Assembly: GCA_018985225.1 (NCBI GenBank)
Contig: JADGIF010000678.1
Coordinates: 1-5,254 of the forward strand
Length of the DNA stretch: 5,254 nucleotides
DNA from: Amoeboradix gromovi X-113
Taxonomy: Eukaryota > Fungi > Sanchytriomycota
Direction of reading: 5' to 3'
The position numbers and the translations under genes are program-made. Below the pieces are notes generated by a model that saw only the letters and a program-made list of their open reading frames with translations, had not been told where the DNA came from and ran no database searches. Below are positions 252-5,254 of this stretch, in pieces; positions within the stretch are counted from its first letter, which is position 1, and every line of letters starts with the position of its first letter.

Positions 252-3248
252 CTAAAATACTGACCCAAAGGCTTTGTCCTGGCTTTCCTTTGTATTTTTA
301 CTGTTTTTAGCCTGACTCAGTCTCCATCCCTTTATGCTTCGTGTGAATGGTGTGTAGTGTAGCACTGCTATAGCCACCATCACACTCAGCACACATCTAC
401 CAATGATGAAGTAACTCCAGCGAATGTTGATGTTGAGCTTCCCAGTATTGTAATTGGTAATGACAGGCTGTAGCGCATTGCTGTAAGTGGCATCTGGTTC
501 TGCTGCAGAGTATAGCGTAGTAACTGTTGCACTCTGCTGCTTTGATCTTGTTCGCAAGGATCTCGATCTGAGGATATGCTCGAGTGACTCATCGACTACT
601 GAGACTGCTTCAGTGGAGACTGCTTCAGTGGAGGCTGCTGTCGTGCTTGTTTTCAACTTGCTCAAAGTCGCTAATGACGTCATAGAAACACTTTGCAAGG
701 TCTCTTTGTAGTCGCTAGTTGTGCTTATGTCTAAGGTATCCGATGATGTCAAAGTATCTGACACAGGGCTAGCTGCATATACCGAGCTGGTAATGTCCGC
801 AGTAGTAGTGAAATAGCTGGTACTCTGAACACCTGCGCCGTACTTAACACAGCTGGAAAGGGATGCATCGTTTACATTGACTAGCAGTGGATTGTTGGAT
901 ATGTTGCATATCATCATCTGCTGAGTATCGTTGATGAGAATGTTTGTGATCAGATTGTTTGGCACATACAGCTCCTTTGGCTTCCGTACTGAGATGCCTC
1001 CTGTGAATTGATTGTATGGAGGTGCATCTCTGTTCAAATAGATGTACTCTACATTGCTTAGATCTGGTACTGGACCTGATAGATTGTTGTTGCTGACATC
1101 TAGACTGACAAGACCAGATGGAATGCTGCTTGGTAAGGATCCAGACAGCTTGTTTTTGTTCAATAGCAGCGATAGCAAGCCAGCAGGTAGTACAGTCGGA
1201 ATTGAGCCATCTATCATGTTGTCTGACAGATACAGATGTTCCAGACTCAGAGCAAGATCTGAGGGGATTGCACCACTGAGCTTGTTGGAGTTCAGGGTCA
1301 AGTTTACGAGTGAGCTTGGCATACCCTGCGGAACTGATCCTGTGATACTATTCTGACTCAGGTCCAAGGCAGTTAGGTTGGATGGGATGTGGCTGGCGTC
1401 AATCGTGCCGTTCAAGTTCATGTTTGGCCATTCTATCCTGTCTACTTTTCCCGCAGTACAGGTCACTCCTGCACTCGAGCAGCAGTTGGTCTCAATAGAT
1501 GCCATGAGATCCGGCTGCACAACATCGAGATTCAATCCCTCTGCAAGAGCAATTACACCTACGCAATCTACGATGTAAAGATTGTTTTTAGTGCACTTTG
1601 TAAGATCTGCATCATCTTTGTGAGCTATGAGTGGGTTGCTTGAGATATCGCACCAGGTTAATACGCTGGTGTCTTTAATTGTGAGATTAGTGATGTAATT
1701 ATGGCTAATGTATATAATCTTAGGTTTGTTTAAAGTTAGCTCCCCTTCAAATCTGTTAAATGCAGGTCCTATGTTTAAAAATAAATAGTTCAAAGCATCT
1801 GGAAAAGCAGGCAAACTACCAGACAGATGGTTGTTATATAAACTAATTTCTGATAGCGTTAAAGGAAGAAAACTTGGCAATTGACCTGCCAAGTAGTTGG
1901 TCTCCAGATAGAGTTTTATCAAGTTCATTGGCAGCGTAGTTGGCACTGATCCATTTAATAAGTTGTTGCTCAAATAAAGATTTTCTAAATTTGGTGGTAA
2001 AATTGCAGGAATTCTTCCACTTAAGCTGTTGCAGCTTAGGTCTAAATACTTAAAGCTATTTGGAAGGCTTGTAGGGATTTCTCCAAAAATGAAGTTACAG
2101 GACAATTCCAACTTTTGAATTGATGACGGGATGGCTGTACCATTTATCGTTCCATTTAAACTCATATAATTCCAGCTGATCTCGATTACGTTGCTTGCAT
2201 CGCAGGTTATGGCACGTGTAGTTGTCAGACAGCAATTGGAATTGATTTCCTGCATTAAATCGGGATTTAAAATGTGCAAGTTCATTCCATATGCAAGGTT
2301 AACAACATTATTGCAGTCTGGTTTTGTGCTCGGTACCGTAGCAGATCTGTCGCAAAAAGCCAATTGGGGATCGTTTGCAGGGTTGCTTAGAGCTGTGTCT
2401 CTCATATTACAGTGCCAGAGCCTGGAATTGTCGTCAAATATAACAGATGATATACTAGTTTTACCAATAGCAACATAAGACGGTTGATATAAATGGATGC
2501 TTCCACTCACAGCCAAAGACTGTAATCCCAGAGAAAATATATTACTGGATAGAGATGGTACTACTCCTGATATTTGATTCCATCCAATATCTATCGCATA
2601 CATACTAGAAGGTAGTGTGGCAGGAATAGAACCGCTGATTTTGTTTGAGCTCGCATCCAGATATCCAAGAGAATTTGGAAGAGTCGCTGGAATTGAGCAA
2701 CTTAACATGTTGTTACTAGCCTTCATCATGTACATACCAGGTGGCAATGTGCCTGGGATACAGCCTGAGATCTCATTAAAGGAGATTGAGAAAAATCCTA
2801 ATGTGGTCGAAAGAGAAGGTATAGTACCGTTAAATCTGTTTTGACTGGCATCAATTTCTTGCAGATTAGGCAATGGCATAACAGGTATACTCCCAGTGAT
2901 ACAGTTAATGCCAATGTATAACACTTCTAGAGCAGACGGTAGGTCCCCTCGTAGTTCACCAGCTATCCTGTTTCCTTCCAAGTTAAGATATGTCAACATC
3001 CCAGGTAAAGCAGTAGTATTTATGCTTCCAGTCAGTTTCATTCCAAACCAATTTATACTATCTACGCGCCCAGATATACACCAAACACTATTTGTAGAGC
3101 AGCAGTCTATTCGAAGAGTTTTCAATAAGTCAGGATTAGATAAACCCATTGCGAGTCCAGTAGCAAGATTAATGACATCTGGGCAGTCTATGGATACCGC
3201 ATAGAATAGTGCTGTAATGAGATAAAGTGATAGTGATTTCGAAACCAT
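252..3248 (-). CDS. Multi-module leucine-rich-repeat receptor-like membrane protein (signal peptide, 3 Cys-capped LRR modules, S/T-rich stalk, single TM helix, short cytoplasmic tail, no kinase), 998 aa
   Basis: Part of the 1087-aa ORF 252..3515. Met90 (CAT at 3246-3248) starts a signal-peptide-like segment, MVSKSLSLYLITALFYAVS. About 20 or more LRRs follow, of the form LPxxLxxLxLxxNxLxGxIPxx. A Ser/Thr-rich region lies at about 450-830 and a hydrophobic segment WSYFIIGRCVLSVMVAIAVLHY at about 355-420. The tail is about 30 aa and Lys-rich, and the TAG stop is at 252-254. No introns are needed. Confidence 0.9.
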   Translation of the reverse strand: MVSKSLSLYLITALFYAVSIDCPDVINLATGLAMGLSNPDLLKTLRIDCCSTNSVWCISGRVDSINWFGMKLTGSINTTALPGMLTYLNLEGNRIAGELRGDLPSALEVLYIGINCITGSIPVMPLPNLQEIDASQNRFNGTIPSLSTTLGFFSISFNEISGCIPGTLPPGMYMMKASNNMLSCSIPATLPNSLGYLDASSNKISGSIPATLPSSMYAIDIGWNQISGVVPSLSSNIFSLGLQSLAVSGSIHLYQPSYVAIGKTSISSVIFDDNSRLWHCNMRDTALSNPANDPQLAFCDRSATVPSTKPDCNNVVNLAYGMNLHILNPDLMQEINSNCCLTTTRAITCDASNVIEISWNYMSLNGTINGTAIPSSIQKLELSCNFIFGEIPTSLPNSFKYLDLSCNSLSGRIPAILPPNLENLYLSNNLLNGSVPTTLPMNLIKLYLETNYLAGQLPSFLPLTLSEISLYNNHLSGSLPAFPDALNYLFLNIGPAFNRFEGELTLNKPKIIYISHNYITNLTIKDTSVLTWCDISSNPLIAHKDDADLTKCTKNNLYIVDCVGVIALAEGLNLDVVQPDLMASIETNCCSSAGVTCTAGKVDRIEWPNMNLNGTIDASHIPSNLTALDLSQNSITGSVPQGMPSSLVNLTLNSNKLSGAIPSDLALSLEHLYLSDNMIDGSIPTVLPAGLLSLLLNKNKLSGSLPSSIPSGLVSLDVSNNNLSGPVPDLSNVEYIYLNRDAPPYNQFTGGISVRKPKELYVPNNLITNILINDTQQMMICNISNNPLLVNVNDASLSSCVKYGAGVQSTSYFTTTADITSSVYAASPVSDTLTSSDTLDISTTSDYKETLQSVSMTSLATLSKLKTSTTAASTEAVSTEAVSVVDESLEHILRSRSLRTRSKQQSATVTTLYSAAEPDATYSNALQPVITNYNTGKLNINIRWSYFIIGRCVLSVMVAIAVLHYTPFTRSIKGWRLSQAKNSKNTKESQDKAFGSVF
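601..645. repeat. 15-bp coding tandem repeat in the S/T-rich stalk
   Basis: GAGACTGCTTCAGTG occurs twice (601-615, 616-630), followed by a degenerate copy GAGGCTGCTGTCGTG (631-645). On the minus strand this encodes TAAS-TEAVS-TEAVS. Confidence 0.85.
849..1568 (-). repeat. LRR module 3 (about 240 aa)
   Basis: N-cap DCVGVIALAEGLNL...PDLM...NCC...VTC...VDRIEWPNMNLNGTI. Five regular LRRs and one LRR with a loop insertion follow, then a C-cap ICNISNNPL...LSSC. Confidence 0.85.
1569..2318 (-). repeat. LRR module 2 (about 250 aa)
   Basis: N-cap DCNNVVNLAYGMNL...PDLM...NCC...ITC...VIEISWNYMSLNGTI. Five regular LRRs and one LRR with a loop insertion follow, then a C-cap WCDISSNPL...LTKC. Confidence 0.85.
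2319..3188 (-). repeat. LRR module 1 (about 290 aa)
   Basis: N-cap DCPDVINLATGLAM...PDLL...DCC...VWC...VDSINWFGMKLTGSI. About 8 regular LRRs follow, then a C-cap LWHCNM...LAFC and a short linker. Confidence 0.85.
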
Positions 3249-3465
3249 ATCTGCTGTATTGGACGCGTTCTGATTTAAACATGGTCTTGCGACCTGATTC
3301 GCGAATAAGAAAAGTGGCTGATGTTCTGGAATTGTTCCAGCTTTTGAAATCTCAAGAATAAATGATTTATCAAGAATACAGGAACAATAAGGACCACTCT
3401 TCACGCTTTCTAGTTTTTTCGATCGACATATATACGCGCTATTCTTCCTACTCATCAATGAGGAA

Positions 3466-3699
3466 TGGGCCATGTCCCATTGCACATTCAAGGAACGCTT
3501 GAAGTTCAAGTGCAAGCAAAGAGGAAAGACGATCGTCGAATGTAATGATGCATATAATGAAGCATTTACTAGTCAGACATGTACAAGGTGTGGTACTCTA
3601 AAGAAAACCAACTTAGAAACCTACACTTGTACCAATTGTTATTTGCAGATAGATATACATCAAGTATATGCATCCTTATTCAATCCCGCCTCAAGGTAG
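3466..3699 (+). pseudogene. Truncated TnpB/Fanzor (Fanzor2/IS607-TnpB-like) nuclease C-terminal fragment
   Basis: ORF 3472..3699 reads MSHCTFKERLKFKCKQRGKTIVEC-NDAY-NEAFTSQTCTRCG-x11-CTNCYLQID. This matches the family pattern SHxxFxxRLxxK...G...ExxTSxTCxxCG...CxxC...DRDxNGAxNI. The N-terminal WED/REC/RuvC-I region is absent (upstream in-frame stop at 3388-3390, no homology seen), and the RuvC-III DRD reads DIH. Confidence 0.8.
3544..3567 (+). repeat. 12-bp imperfect tandem duplication inside the Fanzor fragment
   Basis: AATGATGCATAT followed by AATGAAGCATTT (10/12 identical), encoding NDAY-NEAF. Confidence 0.75.
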
Positions 3700-3790
3700 T
3701 GAAAGCGTGAACAATCACTGTAACGGAGCATCTAGCATTGCTAGCTACTTTGTGGAAATTCTCGATTTTCTCAGAAATCGCTAGCTTTAA
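3653..3790 (+). ncRNA. Putative omegaRNA (Fanzor/TnpB guide scaffold) / right-end structured RNA
   Basis: Hairpins: ATATAC/GTATAT (3653-3669), TAGTGA/TCACTG (3697-3720), CTAGC/GCTAG (3732-3744) and CGATTT/AAATCG (3763-3780), with an alternative outer pair AGCTA (3743-3747) / TAGCT (3782-3786). The position overlapping and downstream of the nuclease 3' end is where TnpB and Fanzor omegaRNAs are encoded. Boundaries are approximate. Confidence 0.5.
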
Positions 3791-4072
3791 CGAGGAGCCC
3801 AGTGCTTGGTTTAGAGCTTTTCGGCACCTGACACATCAAAAACATTAGATAGTTATTTTGTGGCAGCAAGAAACATAAACTTAAAGTTAAACAGCTGAAT
3901 ATACAGTCTGCCCCGACTCAAACTGTTACTCAGATGCTTATCATGGCCTCTAAAATCGCACGTTTCGTTATGTAATCAAAATGAAAACGCTGTAACTTCT
4001 ACAAAGCAAAATTAGTTTTCCAATTGATTGATTTGACAAAAGGAGTAAACCTTTGCAACATGACAAATAGAT

Positions 4073-4918
4073 TTACTTTCTAGGTAACCCATGTCTCAAT
4101 CTGTCAACACGCCTTTCTCTAGTTATCAAGGTAGAGGCTAAAAGTGCAAAGCAACCAGCCATATAGAACATAAAAATCATCGCTTCTAACTTTTTTTCTG
4201 GCAAAGACTTCTCATATGTGCCAAAATTTTTTGAGTACCCGCTCATGTCTTTATTTGCTTGTAACAGAGCACTGCATTCAGAATCAGCGTCTAGCTCAGG
4301 AGTCTCAAGAATTGGCAAGTCAAGCAGTGAATTCCCAACTGAAGTGTTGTCAAAGTCCACAATTGGTGGATCTAAAATGCTATTAACGCAAGCATTTTTT
4401 ATTTTTTTTATTTCGGCGTCACATCTTAGCATCACATTGAAATGATAAATGAAGATGAAAGCCAGAACCGCAAGAAACACTTTACCAACGTTTATCCGGT
4501 GATATTCTTCTGTTAAAATTCTTCTATGCTCCTGTCCAGTATCAAGAGCTCTCTTTTTCAATCTCATTATATTTGCAGTAATATGAGATGCATAATAAGG
4601 ATTCACTTTTCTCATTATTGTTGAAATATCAGCAGGACTCAATGTGGAGCATACCATCTCACTGTATATTCTAAAAATACTTGAAGCAATATCATCTAGA
4701 GTTTTGCGCTGTGCTTCTGGAAGTTCGATTATTTTACATGCTTCTGCATTAGGCTTACCTTCAATTATCTTCATACACTTAGGATCGAAACCACTATCGA
4801 TCAATTGTGTATATAATTGTTCTAATGCTTCTAGTTCGACATATTTAATACCATGTTCTGCAGCGAATCTCTTCCAGTTATAATCAACTCGAGCAGCAAA
4901 TACGAGAGACAACAACAT
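4073..4918 (-). CDS. Hypothetical membrane protein with a short signal peptide and two hydrophobic helices, 281 aa
   Basis: 846-nt ORF with N-terminus MLLSLVFAA. Hydrophobic segments are VFLAVLAFIFIYHFNVML (about 4427-4480) and AMIFMFYMAGCFALLASTLIT (about 4120-4183), followed by a basic tail (RERRVDRLRHGLPRK). No recognisable domain. Confidence 0.75.
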   Translation of the reverse strand: MLLSLVFAARVDYNWKRFAAEHGIKYVELEALEQLYTQLIDSGFDPKCMKIIEGKPNAEACKIIELPEAQRKTLDDIASSIFRIYSEMVCSTLSPADISTIMRKVNPYYASHITANIMRLKKRALDTGQEHRRILTEEYHRINVGKVFLAVLAFIFIYHFNVMLRCDAEIKKIKNACVNSILDPPIVDFDNTSVGNSLLDLPILETPELDADSECSALLQANKDMSGYSKNFGTYEKSLPEKKLEAMIFMFYMAGCFALLASTLITRERRVDRLRHGLPRK

Positions 4919-5254
4919 GTTTTGAGGGGTCCAATCAGTTTTCTTTGCAACATCCTTACGTCAAATCAAACATGGCCAGAGTGATGATGAGCAAAGCGCT
5001 GTTTTTGTTTAAATGTTACTTTGCTGAGATCTTGTCATGATTGATCAAAATAAACTATTAAATTAAGCAATTTATTGATTAAAACAAATGGGACATCAAA
5101 TATAAAAACTGGACTAACTTTCTGTAACAACTTGGAACATTATTTCAGCTTTATTACTTCATGGATTTAAGAGACGAGTGGACATTCAGCTAGTTGCGGA
5201 GTTGACGAGTATAAAAGGAAAATAAATAACTTTTTGTATCGAAATTTCAAAAAT

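Follow-up and report, generated by a model that had tools for sequence, protein, structure and literature searches.

The window analysed here is the complete contig JADGIF010000678.1 of Amoeboradix gromovi X-113, a stretch of 5,254 nucleotides with a GC content of 39.4%. It has two genes on the reverse strand, which code for an LRR protein and for a product of 281 aa (4073–4918, -) that matches no Pfam family. Between them there is a small element related to the Fanzor nucleases (Table 1). It lies upstream of the divergent LRR-protein gene, about 86 bp from its start, and downstream of the other gene, about 275 bp past its stop codon. The LRR protein contains three LRR blocks with Cys-rich caps, and at its C-terminus a stretch that resembles a transmembrane segment. 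Its real gene most likely starts at the ATG in 3251–3249 (MVSKSLSLYLITALFYAVS, signal-peptide-like); the open frame of 1087 aa found at 252–3515 (-) is an artefactual upstream extension, which runs antisense through the Fanzor remnant. The spacer 3909–4049, just past the stop of the 281-aa gene, has a single match elsewhere, with 84% identity, in C1247:318–455 (-).

Table 1. The miniature element of the window, its parts and a neighbouring fragment
Feature	Positions	Strand	Basis and remarks
Whole miniature Fanzor2-derived element, window-type sub-lineage	3338–3797	+	nhmmer; 460 bp, left and right ends kept
Left end, starts CAGCT, diverged form of the family left end of about 167 bp	3338–3463	+	nhmmer profile
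Remnant ORF: RuvC-II Glu E30, C4 zinc ribbon, first Asp of DRD, frameshifted tail	3472–3699	+	PF07282
12-bp tandem duplication	3547–3558	+	Insert columns; common to C401, C560 and C167
Site of private 26-bp deletion (unit about 430–455), removes 'RDHMAARN' and shifts the frame	3654–3655	+	Comparison with sister copies
Right end, terminating ...TTTAACGAGGAG, degenerate in the window copy	3655–3797	+	Family conservation 0.88–0.95 over unit 541–600
Possible second, older family fragment, unit 425–493	3846–3919	+	nhmmer E 0.0077 within the window (weak)

The remnant ORF gives by direct translation a product of 75 aa, MSHCTFKERLKFKCKQRGKTIVECNDAYNEAFTSQTCTRCGTLKKTNLETYTCTNCYLQIDIHQVYASLFNPASR; a sequence-only reading of this DNA had placed its start at 3466, six nucleotides too early. 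All the motifs named in that reading are there: SHCTFKERLKFK (aa 2–13), GKTIV (18–22), EAFTSQTCTRCG (30–41), YLQID (57–61) and a zinc finger of the form C37-x2-C40-x12-C53-x2-C56. The Pfam profile PF07282 (Cas12f1-like TNB, the zinc ribbon of TnpB and Cas12f, formerly OrfB_Zn_ribbon) matches aa 5–61 with E 9.3e-10 and 39 bits, the Pfam cut-off being 26.3 bits. Every other Pfam family, including other zinc ribbons, scores under its cut-off. Chance does not explain the match: in its own genome the 75-aa ORF has at least 150 scored places, with E values of 1e-20 to 1e-30 and amino acid identities of 66–92%.

TnpB and Fanzor proteins share the motif D-X(125,275)-[TS][TS]-X-X-[C4]-X(5,50)-RD (Bao & Jurka 2013, PMC3627910). 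Its central part is present in the window copy as T33-S34-Q-T-C37..C40..C53..C56. The RuvC-I aspartate 125–275 residues upstream is absent both from this copy and from the entire miniature unit described below, because it falls in the deleted region, and the RuvC-III 'RD' 5–50 residues past the zinc finger is absent from the window copy because of its private deletion of 26 bp. After YLQID, with the first Asp of DRD still in the ORF, the frame continues out of phase as IHQVYASLFNPASR and meets a stop; sister copies read ...LKIDRDHMAARNIYIKY... or ...CHLKIDRDHMAARNIYIKY... in the same region. Fanzors are recognised by DPG in RuvC-I and by a RuvC-II Glu that has moved to a point six residues ahead of the zinc finger (Yoon et al. 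2023). Here E30 is followed by A-F-T-S-Q-T and then by C37: the glutamate had been rightly read as the RuvC-II residue of Fanzor type. The description of the segment as RuvC-II, zinc finger and RuvC-III stands for the shifted Glu and the zinc ribbon; RuvC-III is mostly gone with the 26 bp. E30 is the only one of the three catalytic residues left. Two of them have been lost and the window copy therefore cannot encode a nuclease. A further oddity of the ORF, the sequence NDAYNEAF, arises from the 12-bp tandem duplication.

With a profile built on 23 copies, nhmmer aligns window positions 3338–3463 to unit 3–129 (E 1.2e-5) and 3469–3798 to unit 256–599 (E 1.3e-101). A blastn search had suggested a copy truncated at its 5' end, at 3472; this is rejected, as the profile recovers the diverged left end. 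The earlier description of a 5'-truncated, inactive, Fanzor2-like relic is essentially right, with the refinement that the remnant did not arise as a one-off: it is one copy of a miniature element with high copy number and both ends. Downstream of the element, one frame of the fragment 3846–3919 reads ..VAARNINLK.., and a DNA search gave no further copy of this stretch. We considered an intron GT...AG at about 3695–3851, which would splice the ORF onto the ..VAARNINLK.. frame at 3858–3896, and rejected it: homology stops sharply at 3797 in every copy. The 26-bp deletion with respect to the sister copies accounts for the missing DRD..AARNI, and what lies downstream is a weak fragment of its own.

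The window copy belongs to a sub-lineage with at least four members. The other three (C401, C560 and C167) share its diverged left half, its junction between ...GAATGGGCC and ATGTCCCA and the 12-bp duplication. The flanks of the four copies are unrelated and differ upstream of CAG. Since the derived changes are shared at loci with unrelated flanks, the sub-lineage has transposed after these changes took place. C560 and C167 retain the stretch which the window copy lost in its 26-bp deletion.

The family was searched in the assembly of the window itself (10.55 Mb, 1319 contigs). A first look gave 611 candidates for the unit with protein and 917 with DNA, and the left-end 27-mer occurs 446 times in the genome when up to three mismatches are allowed; the reversed control gave no occurrence. 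The copies have diverged by a median of 14% and are scattered over hundreds of contigs. Their unit of about 600 bp is made up of a non-coding left end of about 167 bp, the last 135 codons or so of a Fanzor gene of about 550 codons, and a right end. Unit positions 168–597 match longer copies, which are rare (C385, C565), at their 3' end. The longer copies match OrfB_IS605 (PF01385) with E 2e-11, and two of them (C385 and C477) contain ALDPGVRKF, with the DPG of RuvC-I. Unit 173–520 also corresponds to the 3' coding sequence of P0006, an intact gene from another assembly, starting from codon 416 or thereabouts (nhmmer E 7e-24). The start of this match places the deletion there, with roughly the last quarter of the gene kept: WED, REC and RuvC-I, three-quarters of the gene, were taken away. 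The deletion junction is identical in all the 600-bp copies. The N-terminal 410 aa of P0006 find only 15 stretches, in about 11 loci of the genome. With 446 left ends against some 11 N-terminal loci, the units are internally deleted and non-autonomous, and they outnumber the gene-bearing copies by about 40:1 or more. The family as a whole has what is expected of non-autonomous ghost or MITE-like elements: both ends are present, the coding capacity has been lost, there are many copies and gene-bearing ones are rare.

Sister copies are better preserved than the window one. The ORF of a sister copy matches PF07282 with E 1.4e-18 and has an intact DRDHMAARNIY; IDRDHMAARNIY is present in most of them, NE[SAP]FTSQTC is invariant across the family and open frames of 120–150 aa persist in many copies. 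About one third of the copies sampled by their left end have a shorter arrangement, in which unit 1–181 is joined to 353–599, in place of the 600-bp form. The sub-family with the shorter arrangement carries a 105-bp tandem duplication of unit 352–457 (L109, L123, L128, L131, L144, L150 and L159). In L031 1729–2145, which is C385, the Fanzor frame is fused at RuvC-I to an antisense C-terminal fragment of a serine recombinase: C385 is a rearranged element which carries an inverted piece of TnpA. The assembly yielded no intact gene belonging to the window's own family.

The ends of the element were read from an alignment of 54–66 copies. On the left they start with CAGCT(C/T)GA..., and on the right they terminate in ...TTTTAACGAG (AACGAG), also written ...AACGAGGAG, with GAG coming next in about 70–85% of the copies. 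The copies sit in unrelated flanking DNA; the one exception is a weak W-R preference immediately ahead of CAGCT. Neither terminal inverted repeats (TIR) nor a target-site duplication (TSD) are seen in the aligned copies. Such termini appear to fit elements of the IS607 type, mobilised by a serine recombinase, which have no TIR or TSD (Bao & Jurka 2013, PMC3627910; Yoon et al. 2023, bioRxiv 10.1101/2023.08.09.552727). No TnpA was found beside the ends of the window family; the inverted fragment in C385 is its only trace. We also compared the ends with those of the P0006 element. A CAGCTTG start and an ...AGGAG end are visible in L180, the idea of common ends was however rejected, since local alignments are no better than those of shuffled sequences (187/1000 and 361/1000).

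Several observations bear on the type of Fanzor from which the family derives. Among solved structures its best relative is chain P of 9b0l, the TnpB-like protein L79 (E 1.1e-11 with the family ORF, 1.7e-13 with the C542 ORF), which we take to be the Fanzor2 of Acanthamoeba polyphaga mimivirus. The next solved matches are Cas12f and TnpB chains, and neither the family ORF nor the C542 ORF has a match to a Fanzor1 chain at E<=1. DPG is also found in P0006, P0008 and the C542 ORF; the profile PF12323 (HTH_OrfB_IS605) matches C542 and P0008, and P0006 weakly. From its best solved relative and its signature motifs, we would file the family as Fanzor2-like.

The C542 ORF (L042 943–2958, -) is the sole complete Fanzor ORF seen in the assembly, with 671 aa and matches to both PF07282 and PF12323. 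It belongs to a different family, with 40% identity to the window family in the shared domain. The expectation that full-length Fanzors exist elsewhere in this genome is therefore borne out by C542 and by the decayed long copies C385, C565, C477 and C977; it does not hold for intact genes of the window's own family. The genome has 12 loci with a Resolvase domain. In four cases (C542, C392, C373 and C46) the recombinase immediately precedes a Fanzor and has the same strand, as in the IS607 layout. A peculiarity of C542 is that the first 240 codons or so of its Fanzor overlap, in another frame, a 171-aa ORF with a Resolvase domain (E 1.2e-15). Yet the N-terminus of the Fanzor frame shares 'PFW...LWLP' with P0006 and P0008, so that both of the overlapping frames have stayed conserved.

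An exhaustive profile search gave 6973 matches. Leaving aside short ORFs which are evidently copies of the unit, the nearest are P0006 (551 aa) and P0008 (604 aa), both of them intact and found in GCA_013565735.1, contigs L180 and L181. P0006 has 51% identity to the mini-ORF and also 51% to the piece from a long copy. No recombinase ORF was found at the P0006 locus. GCA_013565735.1 is a very fragmented assembly. The two contigs have tightly packed ORFs, most of them without a family, together with Polysacc_lyase_14, a thioredoxin-like protein, a helicase and ricin-B lectins; it is plausible that they are giant-virus-like DNA.

The best conserved part of the unit is formed by its last 345 bp or so, with values of 0.88–0.95 over unit 541–600. 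By analogy with the right-end guide RNAs of TnpB and Fanzor (Saito et al. 2023, PMC10432273; Yoon et al. 2023), the scaffold of an omegaRNA would be encoded here, with the flanking DNA as guide. Taken one by one, copies form four to five hairpins. The right end of a good copy has a folding z of -2.08; that of the window copy (z -0.40) folds no better than shuffled sequence. A conserved RNA structure was looked for and rejected: over 100 right ends RNAalifold keeps only one hairpin, and a model with five hairpins shows in 100 copies no covariation beyond that of shuffles.

The way in which the copies have changed was studied in two samples: 100 copies with the common deletion junction, chosen by protein similarity, and 60 copies picked by the left-end motif alone. 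Variants private to one copy have a synonymous fraction of 0.19–0.24, against 0.24 expected at random, and they include stops. Those shared by more than 5% of the copies have a fraction of 0.41 in the first sample (90 conserved codons, p 6e-4) and 0.33 in the left-end sample (p 0.019), the expectation being again 0.24. Substitutions cluster at third codon positions in the 90 conserved codons, with a control for base composition, and the non-coding left part is flat. Some third-position excess is also present in a sub-family which lacks the first 31 codons of the ORF and its ATG. In the tree, long gene-bearing copies are interleaved with the short ones. A reading as strong purifying selection, from a pairwise pN/pS of 0.24 and parsimony counts, was given up, the initial set of copies being itself a selection by protein similarity. 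After sampling by the non-coding left end, the base-composition control and a split of the variants by frequency, what remains is a real but moderate signal limited to shared variants. Since private variants are neutral, the present copies decay neutrally; the synonymous-rich shared variants indicate that the source lineages diverged partly under protein-level constraint.

Repeated derivation of the units from coding full-length elements, or recombination with them, is the likelier cause of the shared-variant pattern, and selection on the mini-ORF itself the less likely one. A stand-alone 'mini-Fanzor', in which the source lineages kept the tail of about 130 aa with Glu, zinc ribbon and RuvC-III under selection, is in our opinion quite improbable; if it were true, such a protein might bind the right-end RNA or modulate full-length Fanzors, and the elements would be more than non-coding ghosts. 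A related proposal is that the truncated ORF of about 130 aa is a working small protein still kept by selection, for example as a binder of right-end RNA or DNA or as a regulator of Fanzors. The synonymous enrichment of shared variants, the third-position excess next to a flat left part and the many open frames of 120–150 aa speak for it. However the neutral private variants, with their stops, mean that present copies are not maintained; the excess in copies without the first 31 codons and the ATG, and the long copies interleaved in the tree, both fit a repeated origin of the units from coding full-length elements or recombination with these; RuvC-I, WED and REC are missing from the fragment, which in the window is also frameshifted. 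We consider a working protein of this kind very improbable.

Another proposal concerns the carrier. The family could come from Fanzor1, or from another TnpB lineage outside IS607, on a cut-and-paste element mobilised by a DDE transposase. In its favour, P0006 belongs to an element with a Fanzor and no TnpA, none is found next to the left end of the window family, and Fanzor2* copies captured by transposons with TIR and TSD have been described (Yoon et al. 2023). Against it stand the lack of TIR and TSD in the 54–66 aligned copies, a Fanzor2 as best solved relative with no Fanzor1 chain at E<=1, the PF12323 HTH of the relatives, and the related Fanzors which in this genome lie directly downstream of serine recombinase genes; such an origin is unlikely. 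As for contaminating bacterial or viral DNA, or a chimera made in assembly, the genome was assembled from single cells after whole-genome amplification and had to be decontaminated (Galindo et al. 2021, PMC8371127), and the nearest intact relatives lie in another assembly on ORFan-dense, possibly giant-virus-like contigs. But the hundreds of diverged copies lie in hundreds of contigs, amid genes of eukaryotic type, such as an ORF like a GPN-loop GTPase beside the C385 copy and the LRR protein with a signal peptide beside the window copy, and there are sub-lineages with shared derived changes at unrelated loci. Contamination is extremely improbable and close to refuted.

The element at 3338–3797, a member of this high-copy family with both ends, without TIR or TSD and with two of its three catalytic residues lost, is very probably a decayed, non-autonomous, internally deleted derivative, ghost or MITE-like, of a Fanzor2-type (IS607-like) transposon. 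In a parent Fanzor element an internal deletion would have joined the left end of about 167 bp to the gene tail and the right end. The unit may then have been spread in trans by the serine recombinase (TnpA) of IS607-like elements in the same genome; we only infer this mobilisation, because no intact gene of the family and no TnpA beside its left end were found. The conserved right end would match the part which is transcribed as omegaRNA scaffold in Fanzor/TnpB systems. The window sub-lineage would have kept transposing after a further change in its left half, to decay neutrally afterwards.

It is useful to compare this family with known systems. With the IS607-like Fanzor2 elements (mimivirus L79, ISvMimi/ISvNY2A, PMC3627910) it shares the shifted Glu six residues before the C4 ribbon, followed by DRD..AA.NI, the DPG of its long copies, the absence of TIR and TSD and, at related loci, the recombinase upstream. 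It differs by the deletion of about three-quarters of the gene, by its hundreds of copies and by having no linked TnpA, and it has little sequence identity with L79 (E 1e-11 over 85 aa). Bacterial TnpB-only elements and MITE/PATE derivatives of IS200/IS605-IS607 are also non-autonomous, keep their ends and need TnpA in trans, and the TnpB-only ones have been discussed as possible non-autonomous IS607/IS605 derivatives (Bao & Jurka, PMC3627910). The window family has instead a eukaryotic host, and the deletion took most of tnpB and not tnpA. In P0006 and P0008 the DNA match starts at the codon where the gene remnant of the unit begins, and similarity persists through the C-terminal tail as far as the right end; unlike the unit they are intact genes on ORFan-dense contigs, with ends which have no significant similarity to it.

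Ghost Fanzor loci have already been described, so that the kind of element is known; its density here is unusual. In Spizellomyces punctatus, Fanzor1 has 134 ghost loci of about 550 nt and 42 loci with the gene (Saito et al. 2023, PMC10432273). These ghosts have 30-nt inverted repeats, no gene remnant has been described in them, and their omegaRNA is expressed and usable (PMC10432273). Both are short multicopy units which keep their ends and the right-end guide-RNA region, have lost the nuclease gene and greatly outnumber the gene-bearing copies. The window family differs by its lack of inverted repeats, its Fanzor2 affinity and its tail of 135 codons; it is known here from DNA alone, and it is about 3–7 times more numerous in a genome less than half as large.

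By itself the window copy is an ordinary dead remnant. The family is of more interest: a Fanzor2-type element, normally rare in eukaryotes, has expanded to several hundred miniatures, which by rough arithmetic amount to about 3% of the 10.5 Mb. The idea of ghost loci, which comes from Fanzor1 with inverted repeats, is thereby extended to an IS607-like element without them. The intact Fanzor and the several open serine-recombinase genes of this genome, among them those at C459, C690, C787 and C542, are candidates for questions about mobility and orphan guide RNAs, and the opposition between neutral private variants and synonymous-rich shared ones gives a handle on when the remnant ceased to be a gene. 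The genome paper of A. gromovi (10.5 Mb, 1167 contigs, GC 36.3%) makes no mention of transposable elements (Galindo et al. 2021, PMC8371127). Our literature search found no paper pairing Fanzor with sanchytrids and no report on Fanzors or transposons for the host phylum, a little-studied one.

The window contains the start of a second repeat family, much younger than the Fanzor one, at 5081–5254, where the contig ends inside the repeat. This family has 805 first-look candidates and its copies are 95–98% identical. In L014 and L018 there are inverted terminal matches about 400–470 bp apart. In L022 and L030 the terminus of this second family immediately adjoins the miniature Fanzor2 unit at its right end.
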